A stretch of DNA of 63,766 nucleotides, counting the filler, from Reticulomyxa filosa (Eukaryota > Protista > Foraminifera): the NCBI GenBank assembly GCA_000512085.1. It is 23 parts of 23 records of this genome, joined end to end, with 100 filler letters (N's around TTAATTAATTAA, not from the genome) between each part and the next. Parts side by side here need not be neighbours in the genome. Positions count along the whole stretch, not along the records: positions 32,410 to 42,153 come from ASPP01019429.1; 22 more parts are not named here. One strand, given 5' to 3'. Below the pieces are notes generated by a model that was given only the letters and a program-made list of their open reading frames with translations, was not told where the DNA came from and did no database searches. Both the position numbers and the translations under genes were made by a program. Position 1 is the stretch's first letter. Each line of letters opens with the position of its first letter. Shown in pieces: positions 32,310 through 42,329 of the stretch.

Positions 32310-32429
32310 NNNNNNNNNNNNNNNNNNNNNNNNNNNNNNNNNNNNNNNNNNNNTTAATTAATTAANNNNNNNNNNNNNNNNNNNNNNNNNNNNNNNNNNN
32401 NNNNNNNNNAAAAAAAAAAAAAAAAAAGT

Positions 32430-32629
32430 GATTTGCAAACCTGTATAAAATCGTCGTTTTGTTGTTTTCTGTTTGCTTCAGAGATTGCCTTCCATAATTG
32501 CACTTTTTTGTCAATTGAAATTTTCTTCGCTTCACAAAGTTCATTGATATCACTCCTTTCCAAATGCAGCAACATCTCACTGAGTTTTGTTTTTTTTTGT
32601 ACAGCTGTTTCTAATATAAGCTGAAGCAA
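32430..32629 (-). CDS. SAM-like domain fragment
   Basis: KLSEMLLHLERSDINELCEAKKISIDKKVQLWKAI resembles a SAM helical bundle; ends at a GTTTG donor. Confidence 0.35.
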
Positions 32630-33164
32630 AAAAAAATCAACAACCGAACATCAATTGCAAGATCAATTTAACATTTAAAAAATATCTGATGCAGTTAGGT
32701 GCATTATAAAGTGATTGTAGCTGTCTTTGTTTCCAATTGTGTTGAACACTCGATTTCATCTAACAGTACTCTTTTGTTTTGTAGTACTGTACCTTCAGAA
32801 CGTTGTTTAGCACTATGATATTTTGCAACGAAGAAAGGATTTGATACATTCTTTCCTCTAAGTTAACATAATATTTTTAGAAATTTAAAATTTCGGGGGT
32901 TCTTTGAGAAAAGATTTTGTGCTTGTACAATCTTAATAGCATACCAGTGCTTCTCCTTCAATACATATATTAACTCATGGCTTGGTACCACTTTTAGAAA
33001 AATTAATAATTATTTTATTTTATTTATTAATGTATAGAAAGATCAAGCATCAATACACAAATTTAAGAAAAATACAAAATAAAATAAAAAGATTATTCAA
33101 TTCTGATGTTGCACGATTAAAAAAAGCTTTTTTTTTAAAAAAATTATACTTTTTAAAAATTTGA

Positions 33165-33169
33165 CCAAT
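33165..33169 (+). promoter_or_regulatory. CCAAT box upstream of histone H2A
   Basis: TTGACCAATGAAAG ~155 bp upstream of the ATG; CCAAT boxes are typical of histone promoters. Confidence 0.45.
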
Positions 33170-33322
33170 GAAAGTAGCGTTTTAACTATTTAATAAGTAA
33201 AGTAAGAGATAGATAATTAAAAGCAAATTAAAGATAACATTTTTTTTTTTTTTTAAATAATACTAAATTTTGTGCTATCATTTTATTTTTACAATAAATC
33301 TAAAACAATAAAAAAATAAAAA

Positions 33323-33772
33323 ATGTCCGGAAAAGGCAAACGTGGAAAAAGTGGTGGTAAAGTAGAAGGTAAAGCAGATAGCAAAACACAAACACGATCA
33401 TCTCGAGCAGGATTACAATTCCCCGTTGGAAGATTAGCAAGATATTTGCGTGAAGGACATTATGCACAAAGAATAGGAGCTGCAGCACCTGTATACATGG
33501 CAGCTGTTTTAGAATATGTTGTTGCAGAAGTTTTAGAATTAGCTGGAAATGCTGCAAAAGATAATCAAAAAACACGAATCAATCCAAGACATATTCAATT
33601 AGCTGTCAGAAATGACGATGAACTCAATGTCTTCTTTGGAAAAGCTATCATTGCACAAGGAGGTGTATTACCAAACATCCATCCTTCGCTCGTTCCAAAC
33701 GACAAAAAAAAGAAGAAAAAAGGTGGAGAAAAAACAAAAGAAAAAGATTTGTCTTCTTCACAAGCTTATTAA
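33323..33772 (+). CDS. H2AX: Histone H2A (H2A.X-type, SQAY C-terminus), intronless, complete
   Basis: [56 protein letters not shown]; ends SSSQAY*. Confidence 0.97.
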
Positions 33773-33791
33773 TCAGCTCTATTTTTTCCCA

Positions 33792-33807
33792 GGTGTTTTT
33801 TAACACC
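33792..33807 (+). promoter_or_regulatory. Histone mRNA 3'-UTR stem-loop
   Basis: GGTGTT-TTTT-AACACC: perfect 6-bp stem and 4-nt U loop, flanked by CCCA and ACCTA, 19 nt after the stop. Confidence 0.88.
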
Positions 33808-34171
33808 ACCTAACTTTTAATTGTTGTGAACCATGGCTGTCTTTGAGTTGTTTTTTTAATTGTGCCAAGTTTATTGATTAATTTTATTTCATTATGTTCA
33901 AATGATAACCTGATTTTCAAGCATAAAGGTTGTGACTGAAAGCGTTCATTCTTTAAAATTATTTCTAGTGCAAAATATTGTCAGTGAGCTGAAGTTTTTC
34001 CGTTTAAAAGTATCAGAAAGTTTGACATTTGTTCGAAACTGTACAACAAGAAAAAAATAATGACAGAACCATCAAAAAACAAACATGCTAAAGGAAGAGC
34101 ACACTATTTATTACAAAAAACCGAAGGTCAGAAAATTCACTGGACAGTCCACATTTCGAAAATGCGGTTCT

Positions 34172-35130
34172 TTATGTTTTGTCAGTATTTTCAGTGTTCG
34201 ATTTCAAAGATGCTTGCTTTTTGACAATACCTTCAATGTGACTATCCGCAGGAGTCTTGTCCAAATTCACGTCATTTTCATCATCTTCAGTTAGGTCATC
34301 TGCAAACCCAACCCAGCCAGAAATTCCATAAATGAATTCACGGAACGTTATCTCTTGGTCATGATTGTAGTCCAACTCTTCCATTCGAAGATCCACCTGT
34401 CCATGGTAACATATGCAATGTGCAACAAAATCATGACACTAAACCTAAAAACCAAAAAAAAAAATCAATTAGTGACAATATTTTTTTTAACTAATTCTTC
34501 ATCTCTACAAATCGAAATAAACGCTCGACGGAATTCTGCTTTTGTGATTTCGCCACTTCCATCAATGTCAATGGCATCAAACATATTCTTTACAATCTAC
34601 AACAAATTACCCCAAATGTGCCCTTTTTTTTGTTTGTTTTGTCCTACCCTTCTTCCTTTTTTTTTTTTTTTTATACGTGGTTACAAAAAAAATATGCTTT
34701 TGTATACGTGTCAGAGAAAAATGATGAGAGGACTGAACGTTGAATCCCTTGGTCACGATTTCATATCTTTGTTTAGTGGTTGGATTTTCGTTCTTGTACT
34801 CTTCATTGCGTTTTTCATAATGACACTCGGCAGAACCTGTTACAGGCATTGCCATTTTATTGAAATATAAGAAAAAAATCTAGAAGATGTGTTTTTTTTT
34901 TTAATTATCGATTTTGCGTAGGAGATACATAATCAAAATTACGGACTAGGGTAGTAGCACTAAACCGACTAAAAGCCTCTTACATGTCATAGTTTCGCTA
35001 TCAGCTGTCACATCCTTCCCAAACATGTTTTTCAGTTCCTCGTTTGTCGTTGGTGGATATCCCAAATAATCCAAGAGTAGCAGAAATTTTCCTTTTTCTG
35101 CTAAACACCTAATTTAAAACTGCAAAGGGC
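34172..35130 (-). CDS. EF-hand calcium-binding protein (CML21/22-like), multi-exon; 5' end unresolved
   Basis: MFDAIDIDGSGEITKAEFRRAF and RMEELDYNHDQEITFREFIYGISGWVG in exons separated by GT-AG introns. Confidence 0.8.
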
Positions 35131-35396
35131 AAAACCTAAAGAAAACAATGAAAAAAGATGTTAAGCGGAACCATTTAAATATTTTTGTTGCTTTCTTTAA
35201 AGCGTGTAAAAATTTTAAAAGAAAGCAATTCAATTACGAAAGGGGAAAAATAAAAATATACCATTGATTTACTATGCCTTTTATATTGTCATAATTTTTC
35301 TTACAATCGATTCTAGTAGAAAAATATGTAGTTAACTCATTGAATCATTGTGAGTCGAACCAATTCAAAACTTGGGAAAAAAAAAAGTTGTATGTG

Positions 35397-36695
35397 TTAG
35401 GATTTTTTAGCGTCACGGTTTGACGAAGCCCCTGGAAGATCGGATAAAATTGCACTCGACAAGGGTTGGATATTTCGTTTGGAATTGAGTGTGATCTTGC
35501 CATTTTCAATGGCGAGAATAAGTTTTTCGCAATCATACTGAGCTTTTCGAGATATGACAATCGCATAAGTTTCATCTGAAGTATCACTCTGAGTTCCAAC
35601 CATTTTAATTTTTTCCAACAAAGTACTTGGAAGCTCAAGTATATGACTTTCTTGAGCAAGAGTCACATAACGTGCAAGCGCCTCAATCATTAAGCATTGT
35701 TCAATTGGGTTTGCAAAGAATGTGGCCAATGCACGACACTTTGACGCTTGCACTCTGTTGTAAGCCCCTTCGATGGTGCCACTAGCGCATGTGCGCGACA
35801 ACGGTGCAAGGAGAGTACTATCTACAACATCGGGCACGTACATATGTGCACTCTTATCGTCCCTACCGTGGACCATCCGAGCAGCACAAAACGTATTATG
35901 TAATATCGTTATCACCATGCCATAATAATGTTGCAATAGTTTATGTTTTTCGATTTGTGCAGTCATGTTTTTTTGGTGTGTGTTTGACTCTTTTTTTTTA
36001 TGTGTGTAATAATATTCTGCAAGGAGCACCGACCACAAAATTTCTTTCTTCGATAAACTTATATTCGAATTCAATTTTTCATTAGTATCTTCAGATTTGC
36101 CAATTCCGTCAGTATCAAAACAAGTGGACAATATCTCTTCTAAAACTTCGTCGTTGCCTTGCACTTGCACTTGCACTTGTAAAGGTAAGTCGGCTGTATC
36201 ACCACCCTTAGTAACATCTCCCGACAATAACAAAGTAGGATGACTCATCCCCTCATTATCTTCTTTTTCTCCATTTTCAGCATCCAACTGACCCTTTTCA
36301 ATTTTTTTTTTTTCGTCATCGTCGCAAGATATATACGTATATTTTTTTTTTGTATGTGTATACGTTGCCATCTTCAATTGTTGTTGCTGACACTGTTTTA
36401 TGGCATCTTCAAGTGCAAGGAATTCGGCACACTTCCAAATGTCATCTTTTGCAAATCCATGCTCCGCAATGAAGTCCTTCTCCATCAACTCTTCATTTGT
36501 TTCAAAACGGAGGCTTTCTTTCGAATCCGAGTCTTGAGATGTGTTTGTCGAGATTGCCGACATTTTGTCATCATTGCCAACAGTCTTCAGCAATGGCAAG
36601 CGCCGCAATGATCCCAATATCGCTTCCGCTTTTTCCGAAACTTTTCGATTCTTATCTTTCAATGCAACCTTCAATTGGTTCAACACACTCTGTTC

Positions 36696-36726
<31 letters not shown>

Positions 36727-39700
36727 CCAATGCAGTTCAACTGTCTCAGTAGCTCCATAATTTTTTGCAGTGGCTCTTTTTCGAAAATGTCACAAACTCT
36801 TTGGTCAAATTTTTGTAAAAATGTAAAAATGTTGTGTTTTAATTGCTGGGAATGTTCAACGGAACCGTTTTGCAGCAGTCTGTAGTAAGCCACTTCAATC
36901 TGATTAAACAGCCGGTTTTGTGGTGGATGATAACGGAAATACAACGCAGATGGACAGCATTGCACTATCGTAGGGAAGATAGTTCCCGACACTGTCACCT
37001 GTCGAAGAGGAGTTTGTCCTTCTGCCAAAACCACGCTTGCCAATCCAACGGTATTCAATAGACGACATCCTTGGATATCCAAAGTGGATAAAGCCGTGCT
37101 CCCTGTTTCAATATTTTGAATGGTGGAGCACTCACTAAGATGGAGTGACTGCAAATTCGGAGCCTTCAACTTCAGACTCCCTAATGAAATGGCACCAACC
37201 ATTTCCCATTTTCGTAAGGCGGATAAGTTTGTCAATAACTCCACTTCTTTCAAATGCTTGCAATGATTGGCTCGGAAATGCTCCAGCTTGGATGCTTTAA
37301 GCTTCAGCAATGTGACCAATCCAGATTCGTCCAGAACTAACTCCGTTACAGATGGGAATATCACCAATGGACCCGCTCCTTGCACTTTGTGACAGCGCTT
37401 TGCGATCAGAGTTTTTAAAGCTTGACATTGACTTGCGATTTTGGCCAATCGCTCATCGTCAAGTATGGTGTCACTCAAATCCAGCCAAGTTAACTCCGAC
37501 ATCCCACTCAGCAAAATGCAAATGTCAATGCTCGGCACATGTTTCGAACTTTGTGAGTTTGTCCGAGTCTTTAAAAAAAGGAGTTGCATCCGTATAAAGA
37601 CAAGTCCCGAAAAGGACGTGCTTTTACAATTTGCAACAGCTTACATTGCTGTTCGTTTGAAAAGATGCCCCAGTTCAAGTGTGGCAAGCCACTCTCTGGG
37701 TCGCCTTTCAATACAATGGATTGATGTCCCAAGGACTCCAATTCTTCGAACACTCTAAAGTTCCCGGCCGACACTTCACTGCAAATAGTGTCCAGTTCTT
37801 GGTGGTTGTAACCAAGTGAATTAATCTCCTTCAATGCCGCCTCCGGTGTCAAATCTTCGAGTCCCCAATATGTCGCTCCTAAGGTGGTCTCTCTAGACTC
37901 CACGCCGGTAGTCACATGGTACAAAGCACGGGTGTTTGATGTCAGCACTCCATGTTCATTTACTTTATACCTACCCAAGTCTGCCAAACGTTGGATCGGG
38001 GTTGTGTACTGCTTCAATGCATTGCTATATGCGACTCCAACTTTTGGATGGAGCTGAAGCAAACAGTCCAGCCCGGTCAAGTTGGGATTGCATTTTAATA
38101 AACGATGGAGCCTCAACCATCTGCTGTACACAGCAAAGGCATCACCTTTCTTAAGAGAAATGGGGACAAAGCAATGCTTTGTTGACAATTTTTGCCACTG
38201 ACAAATCGTTTCTGAAGGGAATAGCTTTGTGTACAATGCATCTTGCGCTTGCGCGTCTCGGAATATCGCTTCGATAGTGCGTCTTGCGTCCAAGTGCAAG
38301 AAGCGCTCTCTTGCGGCAGAATTGATTTGCTGTTGCATCTGATCGAGACAAAACAAAATAGTTTTCATTTGTAATGTCAGAGCTCCACTGTTTTTATCCT
38401 GGAGCCAATCCGGAAAAAATGCATGGTCGTGATCAATACTCACGAATGAGTCTCGTCCATTGCCCACATTTTTGACAATGTAATTGATTGGCAAGCCATC
38501 TTCTGGATTGGTTAGCAATGCCACAAATAAGAGCTCCGAGTAATGTTGTGGCTCCAGTTTTGTCAGTCTATCAGGCTCGTTATCAAATACCTCTTGCAAC
38601 GTAGGCCCGTGAATGGCCTCGGAGCAAAGCACTGGCAATGTGGCACTTGCACATTGCAAACATACCAACTCACTGAAGTACGTCCCATGTCCTGCAATGC
38701 GACTGTGGAACTGTTCGATCAAATAACTTACGCCCGGACGTTCGGGCCAAGCTTTGGCATAAATGCTTGGCAGCGTTTCAGAGTGCAAATAGATTGGAGC
38801 CACACTGTTTTGGTCATCGGACATTCGATAACTTTGGAGTCGGCCATTGTCATCCAACAATTGACTGGCTACGTTTTTTTTCAGAGGCCTCCGGCCACCG
38901 AGCAATGGGCTGTTGAATGTGGGTTCATTTGGGAGTGGAGGTCGATCTTCCACCAGCTGTTGGAGCATATGTTTCCAGCGTTTTTCCTTCCTCCCAAAGC
39001 ACAGTCTCTCCACATTGATCCGGCAAACGTCGTAATTTCGCCAAAACGGAGCCAATAAAGTGTTGCATCCCTTCGTCAGCCGACCGCTGCAAGATGACCA
39101 AATTCTGACAAAATGCAAGTCGAACTTCAATGCCGACCAGTTTTTGATAGATGCTTTGATACGTATCCAATTCTCGATGTTTCATCAGCAAGACATAAAC
39201 AAGTCTGGACAGGCTCGATTTATTGTTCGTGACGTCGATACCGAGCTCCGTTTCACATTGTTTGAGCAAAGTAATCTTCTGCTTGGTCACTCCATCAAAT
39301 GCAGGTCTCAGCAAAGTGAGCAAATGACATAGCGAACGAGATGGCACTGACGCAAATGCGCCTCGCTTCTGCTCACTTCGAAACCAGCTTACAATAGCCA
39401 AGTCGGCATCAAGTTTGGAGTGCTTCTTGTCGTCACTCCATTGTTGTATACGTGTGTTCCATTGCGCGTGATACGTTGCGAGTTCTTGTTGGCAGTTGTG
39501 GAGCCACTCCCGACGCAATTGGTGTCGATCCACCGTATTCGTCAAATTGTTTCTCCCGTGGACTTCCAGCTCCTCTACAAATGCTGATTTGTCTTCGGGA
39601 ATGCCGAGCAAGTCTCTGCACAGTTCCAATACCTCCAAACTCAAGTTGGACTGCACACAAGTGTATGCCCATTTGCGAGCCTGCAACTGGCTCCAAGTTT

Positions 39701-42142
39701 TCAAATACTTTGTTTTGCGAGCCACCTGCAAGTACCATGTATTATGCGTATGTACCTCCAAAAGTAGTGCCTCCAAATCGTGTGGATTCAAGCAATAGCG
39801 CATTTTATGCCATCGAATGATATGGTCAATGTCATTAAACCTTGCCTTTTCAATGGCGTCGGGTTGATACAATATTGCTTTTTTCAGACATTGCGGACTT
39901 GCTTCCTGTTCCCATTGCTTGGCACATTGATAGAGTGGCCAGAGAATGCCAAACATACCTTTTAGCACATCTTGTTCCTTTGAGCTCAGTACGTAAGGCC
40001 GAATTTCGGAGGGAGTGAACTGCGTGTTGGGTTGATGGAGCCACTCGTAAGCCGACTCATAATGCAGCTGCGTTACGAAACTCCAGTGCAAGGCCTGACA
40101 AAGTAGGTACTCCAAATGTTGAACGGAGTCAAAAGAAAGAGCTTTGAGCTCACGCAATTTGATCAATTGCGCAGAGAGATGCACTTTCTTTACCCTATAA
40201 AATAGCACCAAAGCCAACAGCATTTGTTGCGGCAACAGAAACAATTGTTCTTTCACCGATACGCCAACGCGTCCTCTTTGCAAAGCATTGGCGGCTTGCA
40301 CCATAGGATGGAGTCCCTCCACTACTTGTCGAACAAGTTCCAGAGCCAGATCTTCGCGCAAATAGCGAGGACTCAACCAACTTTGCAAATTGCTGTCGAG
40401 ACACTGGCGCAAGGTCTTTTGATACGTAGCGAACAATGGCTCCGAACCTGCGAATACGTAGCTGTGCAAGAGAATCTGTCGGTCCAGCAGCTGCCAGTAG
40501 TGTCCCTTCTGCACATTGGCGAGCTCGTCCGGAGTGCGCAGCAGCAAGTCAGGGATGCGATGCGGCATGTAATAATGATTTGCATGCAAGCCGTGGCGCA
40601 CGATTTCGAGCGCCTCAGTCGAGTTCTCGAATAAGTGAAGCAGTTCTCAGGAGTCTCGCCGAGGCCAATCAGCACCACCTCGAACATGGAGCAGGCATGC
40701 ACGAAGAAGTTGCGCACGTGCGAACTGTTTTCGGCTATCAAGCAAGCCGCCTTTACATTGCCATAAGGCGTGATATCAGCACCCAATAAGAGCATGGCAT
40801 AAGAGCAAGGACATGGAGGCAGTCGTTGCATTACAAAGCTCCAAATGCTTTCCAAAAAGCCACACAATCCCGTTGTCAATTGCACTGCAATTTGAGGATA
40901 TAAAAAGCAAGAATTTGTTGTTTTCATCGTTGTCGCTGTCGTTATTGTCGTTTCTGTTTCTTTGGTGACACAATTGGCTCTGAGTTTGGCCAACCGCTCC
41001 GTCCACGAGTCGTATACGTTGTCCGGAACGGAGTGTGTGGATTCGGGCAGAGCATGTGCTAAAATTCGGAGTCTCTGCGAGTATGCGTAGCGACTCCAGA
41101 GCCAGAAGGCAGTGTCGGACTTGGCATGTTGTTTGGCCACCACGCATGCAGCGGCAGCATAGCCCATGGCCTGTCGATACAATGTGTGAGCAATAAGATT
41201 ATCCGCAGTATTAGTAGTAGTAGTACATGCCACATGTGCAAGGACGGCATCACTAACGGCTAGCAAACATGCCACAGCTACCTGAGGCGCTGTCTGCAAC
41301 GTATGTGCAATCAGCGCTACGTACTCACTCCGACATGTCAGCAGCTGCGTCCGAAAGAAGCTCTGTAATTCATTACCGACAATGGAGGAGGATTTTGGAA
41401 AAGCAAACTGTGTCGCCTGCGCGCGATCGAAACGAACCTGCCATGCAATTTGTGTATTGGCATCGATGACGACACTCCAATCAATGGTCGGACGTATAAA
41501 CGACGCCAGAGCTACATGCCCAGACTTTAGAGCCTCATGCTCGGCACGGTCTCCATTCACCGTCAGCAAACATATGTCCGCTCCTTGGTGCAAGAGCCAT
41601 TGCACCGTGCTGCGCTGTCCATAACGTGCCGCCTTGTGCAGCGCCGTATATCCATAGCGATTGGCTTGGTTCACGTCAAAGCCTGGTAACATGTCCAACA
41701 TCCATAACATTACTCTATGCTGTCCGGTTGCTGCCAAGGCGTGCCATACGGTGCTCCCTTCCTCGTTTGCTGTGTTCAGCATGCTCGCCATCTGGTGCAC
41801 GTCCATGTGCTTGCGCAACCATGACGTCGCTGCCTCTATATTTTCACTGTTACTGCGCTGCGCGCCGTCTGCCCAATAAAAACAAATGTTCTGCTGCGAG
41901 TCGTCACGATACTCCAATAGAGTCTTGTCTTGCCTCAATAGTACTGTCGCGCAACTCCATCTTCCTCGTCGCAGCGCCAGGAGCAACAACTTCAACACAC
42001 TCTTCTTTGCTTCCATGTGCTTCTCGAGCCATGTCTCAAGCTCTTTGCCACGATCTTGAAGTACTAAATCCTCAATTGTCAACACCGGGGGTAAGATTGG
42101 CTCTGGTCCGTCTGGAGTGACTGTTTCATCAAACATCATCAT
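35397..42142 (-). CDS. Giant multidomain protein: ankyrin repeats, degenerate DUF294-like nucleotidyltransferase with helical C-domain, PI3/4-kinase/HipA-like kinase, LRR, HEAT, C-terminal helical domain (about 2250 aa; three frameshifts)
   Basis: Four overlapping same-strand ORFs joinable by single-base shifts near 40640, 38985 and 37575. GYTALHKAARYGQ; PPCPCSYAMLLLG..TPY..LIGLGET; SVKEQLFLLP; LLTNPEDGLPINY..SIDHDHAF; LTWLDLSD/LSTLDIQGC; LKDKNRKVSEKAEAILG. Confidence 0.75.
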
Positions 42143-42329
42143 TTTTTTTTTTTNNNNNNNNNNNNNNNNNNNNNNNNNNNNNNNNNNNNNNNNNNNNTTA
42201 ATTAATTAANNNNNNNNNNNNNNNNNNNNNNNNNNNNNNNNNNNNNNNNNNNNGTGAACATTGACCTTTTCATTGTAGAATGATTTATTAGGTTTGAAAT
42301 GAAAGAAAAAGAAAAAGAAGAAGAAGAAA

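Follow-up and report, generated by a model that had tools for sequence, protein, structure and literature searches.

Here we describe a giant multidomain gene of the foraminiferan Reticulomyxa filosa. The gene lies in a 63,766-nucleotide stretch composed of 23 joined parts of this genome (assembly GCA_000512085.1), which we call the window, on a contig piece of 9,744 bp at positions 32410-42153 (ASPP01019429.1). We found that it is one diverged member of a sizeable family of giant proteins that has not previously been described as such. The core of the family is predicted to be a protein nucleotidyltransferase (NTase) similar to DrrA and GlnE (DUF294 plus DUF294_C), followed by a domain resembling type II phosphatidylinositol 4-kinases (PI4Ks), with ankyrin, leucine-rich repeat (LRR) and HEAT interaction repeats on both sides. 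The account that we favour, with moderate confidence, is that this is a nuclear gene of a family of bacterial origin, which was duplicated in R. filosa and kept under selection until recently.

Results

The locus is a single intronless gene

The gene is made up of four long, overlapping open reading frames (ORFs) on the minus strand (40373-42142, 38925-40601, 37571-39130 and 35397-37589; pieces 1 to 4), which we searched separately. All four pieces are collinear with a 2,551-amino-acid R. filosa paralogue, P0003 (ETN98834.1), and no intron-like gap was present in their alignment to the R. filosa paralogues. The locus is therefore one gene. Translation of the ORF overlaps in all frames revealed three single-base frame changes (Table 1). 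A partial R. filosa protein found by a word search with piece 3, P0002 (RFI_17107), runs uninterrupted across the first two of these breaks, and the third is spanned in other paralogues by a spacer of similar length. Because the N-terminus of the gene lies 11 bases from the edge of the contig piece, the giant protein is possibly truncated at that end.

A histone H2A gene is present on the same contig, about 1.6 kb past the 3′ end of the giant gene, and the contig is therefore nuclear. An earlier note, made from the DNA alone, had read the locus as one intronless nuclear gene encoding ankyrin repeats, a pseudo-NTase, a kinase, LRRs, HEAT repeats and a C-terminus of unknown kind. Both its gene structure and its domain order proved correct, the latter being recovered by Pfam, the paralogues, the family profile and the structure model. 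The giant gene has an overall GC content of 41-51%, compared with 25-33% in its flanks. Its GC content at third codon positions (GC3) is 0.40-0.54, whereas that of H2A, whose third positions are extremely AT-biased, is 0.17. Along the giant gene the GC content declines steadily, from 54% at the 5′ end to 35-40% at the 3′ end.

In GenBank the gene is annotated as separate hypothetical proteins. Two R. filosa models, RFI_22222 (P0167, 977 amino acids) and P0001 (417 amino acids), map to the contig at 92-100%. The former crosses the first frame break by means of a 167-nt 'intron' (40509-40675) that excises part of the NTase, and the latter (window 37574-38824) comprises most of the kinase-like domain.

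The kinase-like domain is predicted to adopt a type II PI4K-like fold

At the level of sequence, piece 3 matched nothing in Pfam, NCBIfam or PDB. Searches of PDB with phmmer gave nothing meaningful for pieces 2 and 3, and a kinase family profile retrieved only chance matches there and no kinase. PF00454 (PI3_PI4_kinase) was not matched by the window piece or P0002 at E<=10, nor by P0003, P0007, P0009 or P0011 at E<=0.01.

We therefore turn to conserved residues and structure. In an alignment of 67 sequences (A1), K77, the D162...N167 loop and the D184/D186 motif are near-invariant, and we read them as the ATP-binding lysine, the catalytic-loop Asp...Asn and the metal-binding aspartate. The window copy retains K77, D162, N167, D184 and D186. 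Given piece 3 as a single sequence, AlphaFold returned a pLDDT of 32; the model was confident only with alignment A1, reaching a pLDDT of 91.7 and a pTM of 0.89. The top Foldseek match of this model was PI4KIIalpha (probability 1.0), and an exhaustive VIA-align search placed 4pla_A first (Z 17.4, root-mean-square deviation 3.3 over 251 residues), followed by 4hnd_A (Z 17.2). Lower scores were obtained for CotH and actin-fragmin kinase (12.1), phosphatidylinositol 3-kinase and PI4KIII (about 10), HipA (9.4) and MavQ (8.3). A shape search of the ESM Atlas likewise put plant type II PI4K clusters on top. The earlier note had called the domain PI3/4K/HipA-like, and because the PI4KII score stands well above the next tier, this description can be sharpened to type II PI4K-like. 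The fold is thus modelled as that of a type II PI4K with a complete set of catalytic residues, and kinase activity is predicted.

Compared with PI4KIIalpha and PI4KIIbeta, the catalytic-loop Asp/Asn and the metal-binding Asp motif are at the expected places, but the domain matches neither PF00454 nor any PDB kinase by sequence, and the family domain has a helical extension of its own of about 120 residues. The N-terminal PI 4-kinase domain of Legionella LepB and the lipid kinase MavQ are likewise atypical kinases of intracellular bacteria. By language-model features the nearest named clusters carry LepB_N (0.91); however, LepB_N (PF18640) gave no Pfam match even at E<=10, and the MavQ structural score is well below that of PI4KII.

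The NTase motif is lost in the window copy and intact in its relatives

The region upstream of the kinase-like domain aligns column for column with the NTase regions of R. filosa paralogues and bacterial relatives that pass PF03445. Paralogue P0003 and the bacterial proteins P0009 and P0011 pass the Pfam cut-off for DUF294, and P0009 and P0011 also pass that for DUF294_C. Residues 45-233 of piece 2 match P0009 543-724 (E 4e-8) and P0011 502-687 (E 2e-9) in phmmer. The window copy itself gave no Pfam match to PF03445 (DUF294) or PF10335 (DUF294_C), and paralogue P0002 scored 20.8 bits (3.7e-4) against PF10335, below the cut-off of 22.5. Furthermore, a profile of the module built from nine family members (A5) matched the AMPylation domain of DrrA (6yx5_B, E 1.7e-9; 3nku_A, 2.5e-5) over two stretches, the catalytic core and the helical C-part. 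These results support the earlier assignment of a DUF294/GlnD-like NTase with a helical C-domain.

Pol-beta-fold NTases carry a catalytic G-[SG] ... D-x-[DE] motif, which the window copy lacks. In alignment A4 the family motif G-S...S-D-x-E is replaced in this copy, with a deletion of four residues and both acidic residues gone. The Gly-Ser and Ser-Asp-x-Glu motif is otherwise invariant in the family, and it is intact in R. filosa P0003, P0157 and L044 and in seven bacterial relatives. The NTase of the window copy is therefore best described as a probably catalytically dead DUF294/GlnD-like domain. The term pseudo-nucleotidyltransferase, used in the earlier note, fits the window copy and not the family, as the three other R. 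filosa loci examined retain the motif.

The AMPylation domain of Legionella pneumophila DrrA/SidM, whose NTase adenylylates Rab1 (PMC3710099), resembles the family NTase by profile in both its catalytic core and its helical C-part. It differs from the window copy, which is without the Gly-Ser and Asp-x-Glu catalytic motif. In addition, no Rab-GEF or P4M domain was reported in the Pfam scans of the pieces and their relatives, and the family module is embedded in a giant repeat protein with the kinase-like domain next to it.

Repeats flank the core on both sides

Pfam and NCBIfam scans of the four pieces returned only ankyrin matches and an LRR match below threshold. The ankyrin repeats predicted in the earlier note are well supported: residues 120-192 of piece 1 matched Ank_4 (1.1e-10, 41.9 bits, cut-off 22.7), Ank_2 (2.9e-10, 41.0 bits, cut-off 27.3) and Ank (7.3e-10, 39.0 bits, cut-off 21.1). 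The Cys-containing LRRs reached 23.3 bits with LRR_4 (7.7e-5), under the 27-bit cut-off. A pattern of repeats can be seen in the sequence, and homologous LRR regions occur in P0003-P0006 and in the bacterial proteins P0007, P0012, P0014 and P0017.

Of the proposed HEAT repeats, only a remnant is present. In P0003 a strong HEAT array spans residues ~1830-2300 (HEAT_2, 2.3e-48); the window copy aligns only to its two edges, on either side of the poly-Q tract that the earlier note had pointed out (36691-36726). About 390 HEAT residues of P0003 are missing, and no HEAT match to the window copy was found in the Pfam scans. The C-terminal domain, consisting of the last ~180 residues and listed in the earlier note as an unknown helical C-terminus, gave no Pfam match and no lead in the ESM Atlas; it is conserved only in R. 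filosa paralogues.

The kinase-like domain defines a large family in bacteria

Using the kinase-like domain in an exhaustive HMMER search of representative clusters at 50% identity, we found 849 clusters at E<=1e-3, of which 488 reached E<=1e-10. The members are mostly 1,500-5,000 amino acids long, with the kinase-like domain in the middle of the protein. The named matches include a Neochlamydia protein that carries the kinase-like domain (P0161) and metagenome-assembled genomes (MAGs) of Pseudomonadota; P0011 comes from a MAG of Gammaproteobacteria. We also scanned GTDB species genomes with a narrower alignment of the kinase domain. All 39 loci found were in MAGs of Chlamydiota, Dependentiae, Holosporales/Paracaedibacteraceae, other Alphaproteobacteria and Gammaproteobacteria, with several family copies per genome in many of them, and none was in a MAG labelled Rickettsiales. 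Chlamydiota, Dependentiae, Holosporales/Paracaedibacteraceae and Gammaproteobacteria are lineages known for protist endosymbionts. When IMG/VR was scanned for relatives in giant viruses, none was found. The earlier note had likened the NTase and kinase motifs to those of large repeat proteins from amoeba-associated Chlamydiae and Legionellales; these loci and the tree described below confirm a resemblance to giant repeat proteins from Chlamydiae and gammaproteobacteria that live with protists.

The closest relatives outside R. filosa are at most 39% identical, and all neighbourhoods checked are prokaryote-like. P0015 adjoins LolA and FtsK, P0158 adjoins the dcw cluster, P0017 lies among insertion sequence (IS) elements and MerR, P0021 adjoins P-II and TetR genes, and P0008 is in tight tandem with other giant genes, with prokaryote-like gene packing. 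P0009 (L042:10001-18520), a protein of 2,839 amino acids with the architecture Ank-DUF294-kinase-like-HEAT, is encoded within a type VI secretion system (T6SS) cluster. Upstream are Hcp, TssE/F/G and ClpV, and downstream are a DUF4280 (PAAR-like) gene, VgrG, VipA/B and ImpA. This location suggests that P0009 is a T6SS cargo.

About 45 of about 200 family members have two complete kinase-like domains in tandem, which replace the NTase (for example L003, L004, L005, L006, L010 and L014). In P0021 (L049:70-5483) the gene overlaps that of a P-II (GlnB-type) protein by one base; this is curious, as GlnD-type NTases modify P-II proteins, and we found no NTase motif in P0021. P0018 (L001:2398-24205) lies on a 212-kb metagenomic contig of 30% GC, beside genes for a 1,993-amino-acid ankyrin-WGR-PARP protein, a Ras/Roc-VWA protein, a P450-reductase fusion and a RING-finger protein. 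Near P0017 is a TIR-NACHT protein (L047:22013-25288), and the two share a CBUA0006_C C-terminal domain. A distant family member, P0168, combines DUF294 and LRR with a Ras-type GTPase.

A related architecture appears to occur in the NEX2 family of Neochlamydia, in which DUF294 lies mid-protein in the order F-box, DUF294, TPR (Domman et al. 2014, PMC4209131). Like the present family, NEX2 is large and expanded and consists of repeat proteins of a protist symbiont whose central part holds a DUF294 NTase; it differs in having F-box and TPR repeats rather than ankyrin, LRR and HEAT. The word 'kinase' appears 0 times in the text of the NEX2 paper (PMC4209131). The earlier note had offered the window gene as a candidate new system. 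This does not hold for the gene, which is one diverged paralogue among at least seven R. filosa loci and hundreds of bacterial clusters, and NEX2 had already placed DUF294 in giant repeat proteins.

The R. filosa copies form a single lineage

We counted at least seven loci of the family in the R. filosa genome: the window copy, P0002-P0006 and P0157. They lie on different contigs, are more GC-rich than their own AT-rich flanks, and carry unrelated annotations ('HEAT repeat PBS lyase', 'peptidase C14', 'serine/threonine kinase', 'LRR protein' or hypothetical). The paralogue loci L044:7712-15316 and L045:552-8397 contain two to four frame changes, all but one at homopolymer runs, and are annotated as several genes (Ank, DUF294 and HEAT proteins) or with short bridging 'introns'. 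In P0006 (ETO30327.1) the catalytic-loop and metal-binding motifs are replaced by Asn-rich sequence at about residues 620-660, which makes it a likely pseudokinase. Set against the NTase loss in the window copy, this indicates that the paralogues have lost different activities.

An unrooted IQ-TREE phylogeny of 48 kinase-like domains, six of them from R. filosa, grouped these six in one clade (100/100). This clade falls within an NTase-linked subfamily of 21 members (100/100), the remaining 15 of which derive from bacterial or metagenomic contigs. The window copy is the earliest branch among the R. filosa copies, with a terminal branch of 0.43. What the tree shows robustly is that the R. filosa copies are a single foraminiferal lineage within a subfamily in which all seven members checked are prokaryotic.

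The reading frame has stayed open

The four pieces contain no in-frame stop over 2,245 codons. The paralogues share about 60% amino acid identity, with saturated synonymous sites, and we therefore chose a stop-codon simulation over the ratio of non-synonymous to synonymous substitutions (dN/dS). With 1% unconstrained substitution, at least one stop arose in about 97% of trials and the frame remained open in about 3%. The absence of stops thus limits neutral decay to less than about 1%, so that the breaks are recent or are sequencing errors. It also follows that the window copy was still held in frame during nearly all of its considerable divergence, in which it lost the NTase motif and the HEAT repeats. 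Homopolymer runs are the site of two of its three breaks. The assembly was probably made largely from 454 reads. Either the three breaks are homopolymer-type sequencing errors or they are very young lesions. We read the window copy as a diverged paralogue that was probably selected and functional until at least very recently.

Other features of the contig

Between H2A and the giant gene, short ORF pieces on the minus strand (34172-35074) look EF-hand-like and are presumably exons of an intron-containing gene; the single piece tested had no Pfam match. Rfam and tRNA scans of the contig piece found nothing. The coordinates of the features are collected in Table 1.

Table 1 Features of the giant gene and its contig, in window positions
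Feature	Position	Strand	Basis or remark
Whole gene	35397..42142	-	~2,247 codons in four reading-frame pieces, no intron
Ankyrin repeats, 2-3 units	41567..41785	-	Pfam, above cut-offs
Degenerate core of DUF294/DrrA-like NTase	40649..40822	-	Alignment A4; Pfam DUF294 in relatives
Helical NTase C-domain, DUF294_C-like (HEPN-related, substrate-binding)	39903..40469	-	phmmer matches to relatives
Helical linker between NTase module and kinase	38986..39902	-	Conserved only among R. filosa paralogues
Type II PI4-kinase-like catalytic domain (atypical protein-kinase-like)	37934..38983	-	AlphaFold2 model, Foldseek, VIA-align, A1 motifs
Helical C-terminal extension of the kinase-like domain, within the conserved family domain	37574..37933	-	A1, AlphaFold2 model
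Cys-containing leucine-rich repeats	36945..37523	-	Pfam LRR_4 below threshold; homology
HEAT array remnant, 1-2 units, with poly-Q	36555..36737	-	Alignment to P0003
Low-complexity acidic/Lys-rich stretch	35985..36554	-	No detectable relatives
C-terminal domain	35436..35981	-	Found only in R. filosa paralogues (P0003 2383-2549, P0005 1327-1719)
Frame break 1	40644..40648 (~40646)	-	Single-base change; P0002 continuous, no gap
Frame break 2	38981..38985	-	Within an A5 run
Frame break 3	37573..37579	-	Within a T7 run
Histone H2A gene (context)	33323..33772	+	Same contig

Discussion

The results described above are best explained by a bacterial gene family that entered the nuclear genome of R. filosa. 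The most likely history would be a single transfer from an intracellular bacterium to the foraminiferal lineage, followed by duplication. Close contact of R. filosa with intracellular bacteria is documented, since a Midichloriaceae symbiont of this species has been co-sequenced with it (PMC10847448). In intact relatives the NTase module would most likely act like DrrA and GlnE and nucleotidylylate a target protein, and in the window copy it would be a non-catalytic remnant. The ankyrin repeats, the LRRs and the HEAT remnant may bind partners, and the PI4KII-like domain may phosphorylate a phosphoinositide or a protein hydroxyl. The window protein, if expressed as one chain, would then be a repeat-scaffolded kinase with a pseudo-NTase domain.

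Several observations weigh against this account. The window copy has lost the NTase motif and HEAT repeats and has a longer branch than any other catalytically intact copy, all of which would fit decay as well; the apparent HEAT loss could itself stem from the collapse of repeats during assembly, which is fragmented here. Kinase activity and substrate are predicted from fold and motifs, because no sequence-level match to any solved kinase exists. The placement of the R. filosa clade among the bacterial members of the subfamily, branching after P0015 and P0021, received support of only 65/85; with this nesting and an unrooted family, transfer from eukaryotes to bacteria is conceivable. Horizontal exchange, as the earlier note had put it, is plausible.

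It is possible, and more so than any other competing account, that the locus is a true, unexpressed pseudogene, a decaying paralogue with three real frameshifts, a dead NTase and a collapsed HEAT array. Three frame changes fall within 6.7 kb, the NTase motif is gone in the window copy only, the ~390 HEAT residues are missing and the terminal branch is long (0.43); moreover, the loss of kinase motifs in P0006 shows that the family does shed functions. However, decay of this kind is held below about 1% by the complete lack of stops, and neither the catalytic residues of the kinase nor the LRR pattern has been lost. The homopolymer position of two breaks argues in the same direction, and even the best-conserved paralogue loci are frame-shifted, mostly at homopolymers, a pattern that suggests sequencing error no less than decay. 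Whether the family is bacterial at all is a separate matter. Eukaryote-like effectors bearing ankyrin, LRR or HEAT repeats are usually assumed to have been acquired from hosts, and intracellular bacteria could have taken these genes from protists, with the R. filosa copies being inherited vertically. Every repeat type, as well as the closest solved fold, type II PI4K, is typically eukaryotic, and an unrooted tree with weak placement of the R. filosa copies leaves room for this view. We consider it unlikely, since the nearest relatives outside R. filosa are at most 39% identical and, where checked, sit in prokaryote-like neighbourhoods, the giant gene is intronless while its neighbour appears split into exons, and its GC3 is far from that of the host H2A. 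In addition, the DrrA/GlnE-type NTase is a bacterial domain (PMC3710099), and the bacterial diversity, including the tandem-kinase subfamily, is far larger. No other eukaryote was found among the named matches and checked neighbourhoods, which is a weak argument as most matches are nameless.

The nuclear location could also be apparent only, if a symbiont gene had been misassembled onto host DNA; a co-sequenced Midichloriaceae symbiont (PMC10847448) and the gap in GC between the gene and its flanks would be expected in that case. We find this hardly credible. H2A follows at about 1.6 kb on the same contig, the seven paralogous loci lie on separate R. filosa contigs that all have AT-rich flanks, and the gene contains a poly-Q tract and low-complexity inserts. 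Nor did the GTDB scan find the family in any MAG labelled Rickettsiales, and the GC content falls gradually to the 3′ end with no sharp junction. Finally, the earlier note had suggested an innate immune receptor of the NLR/ROCO kind with an integrated decoy, in which sensor repeats surround enzymatic modules. Repeats do flank the enzymatic domains on both sides, as in ROCO and NLR (STAND) receptors, and the distant member P0168 joins a Ras-type GTPase to DUF294 and LRR. Nevertheless, the Pfam and NCBIfam scans of the four pieces found no NACHT, NB-ARC, AAA or Roc/COR domain, no feature supports a decoy, and nothing in the gene or its context links it to defence. Its closest relatives are effector-type bacterial proteins, one of them inside a T6SS cluster, and we regard a receptor as very improbable. 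Transfer from bacterium to host is likely the more economical reading of the sequences.

The family has implications beyond this locus. Its kinase-like domain has no model in the Pfam version that we used and is not matched in sequence by any solved kinase. It nevertheless marks out hundreds of clusters of giant proteins in MAGs of Chlamydiota, Dependentiae, Holosporales and Gammaproteobacteria, often occurs as a tandem pair or joined to a DrrA-like AMPylase, and in one member lies within a T6SS cluster. These proteins are candidates for a major class of enzymes, so far uncharacterised, that manipulate hosts. In the foraminiferal nucleus, where the family is intronless and has several copies, it offers a clear candidate example of the movement of effector-type genes from bacteria into a protist host, and recognizing it would correct the GenBank annotation that splits these loci into unrelated-looking proteins. 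More tentatively, we propose that Foraminifera captured and multiplied a bacterial effector gene, encoding a Rab-AMPylase-type NTase and a PI4K-like kinase, that is now used by the host. If this is true, the host might employ it to regulate its membrane and vesicle traffic, which is very active, or turn it as a borrowed tool against intracellular bacteria, and the kinase-like domain would represent a previously unrecognised, widespread family of effector kinases of protist endosymbionts.

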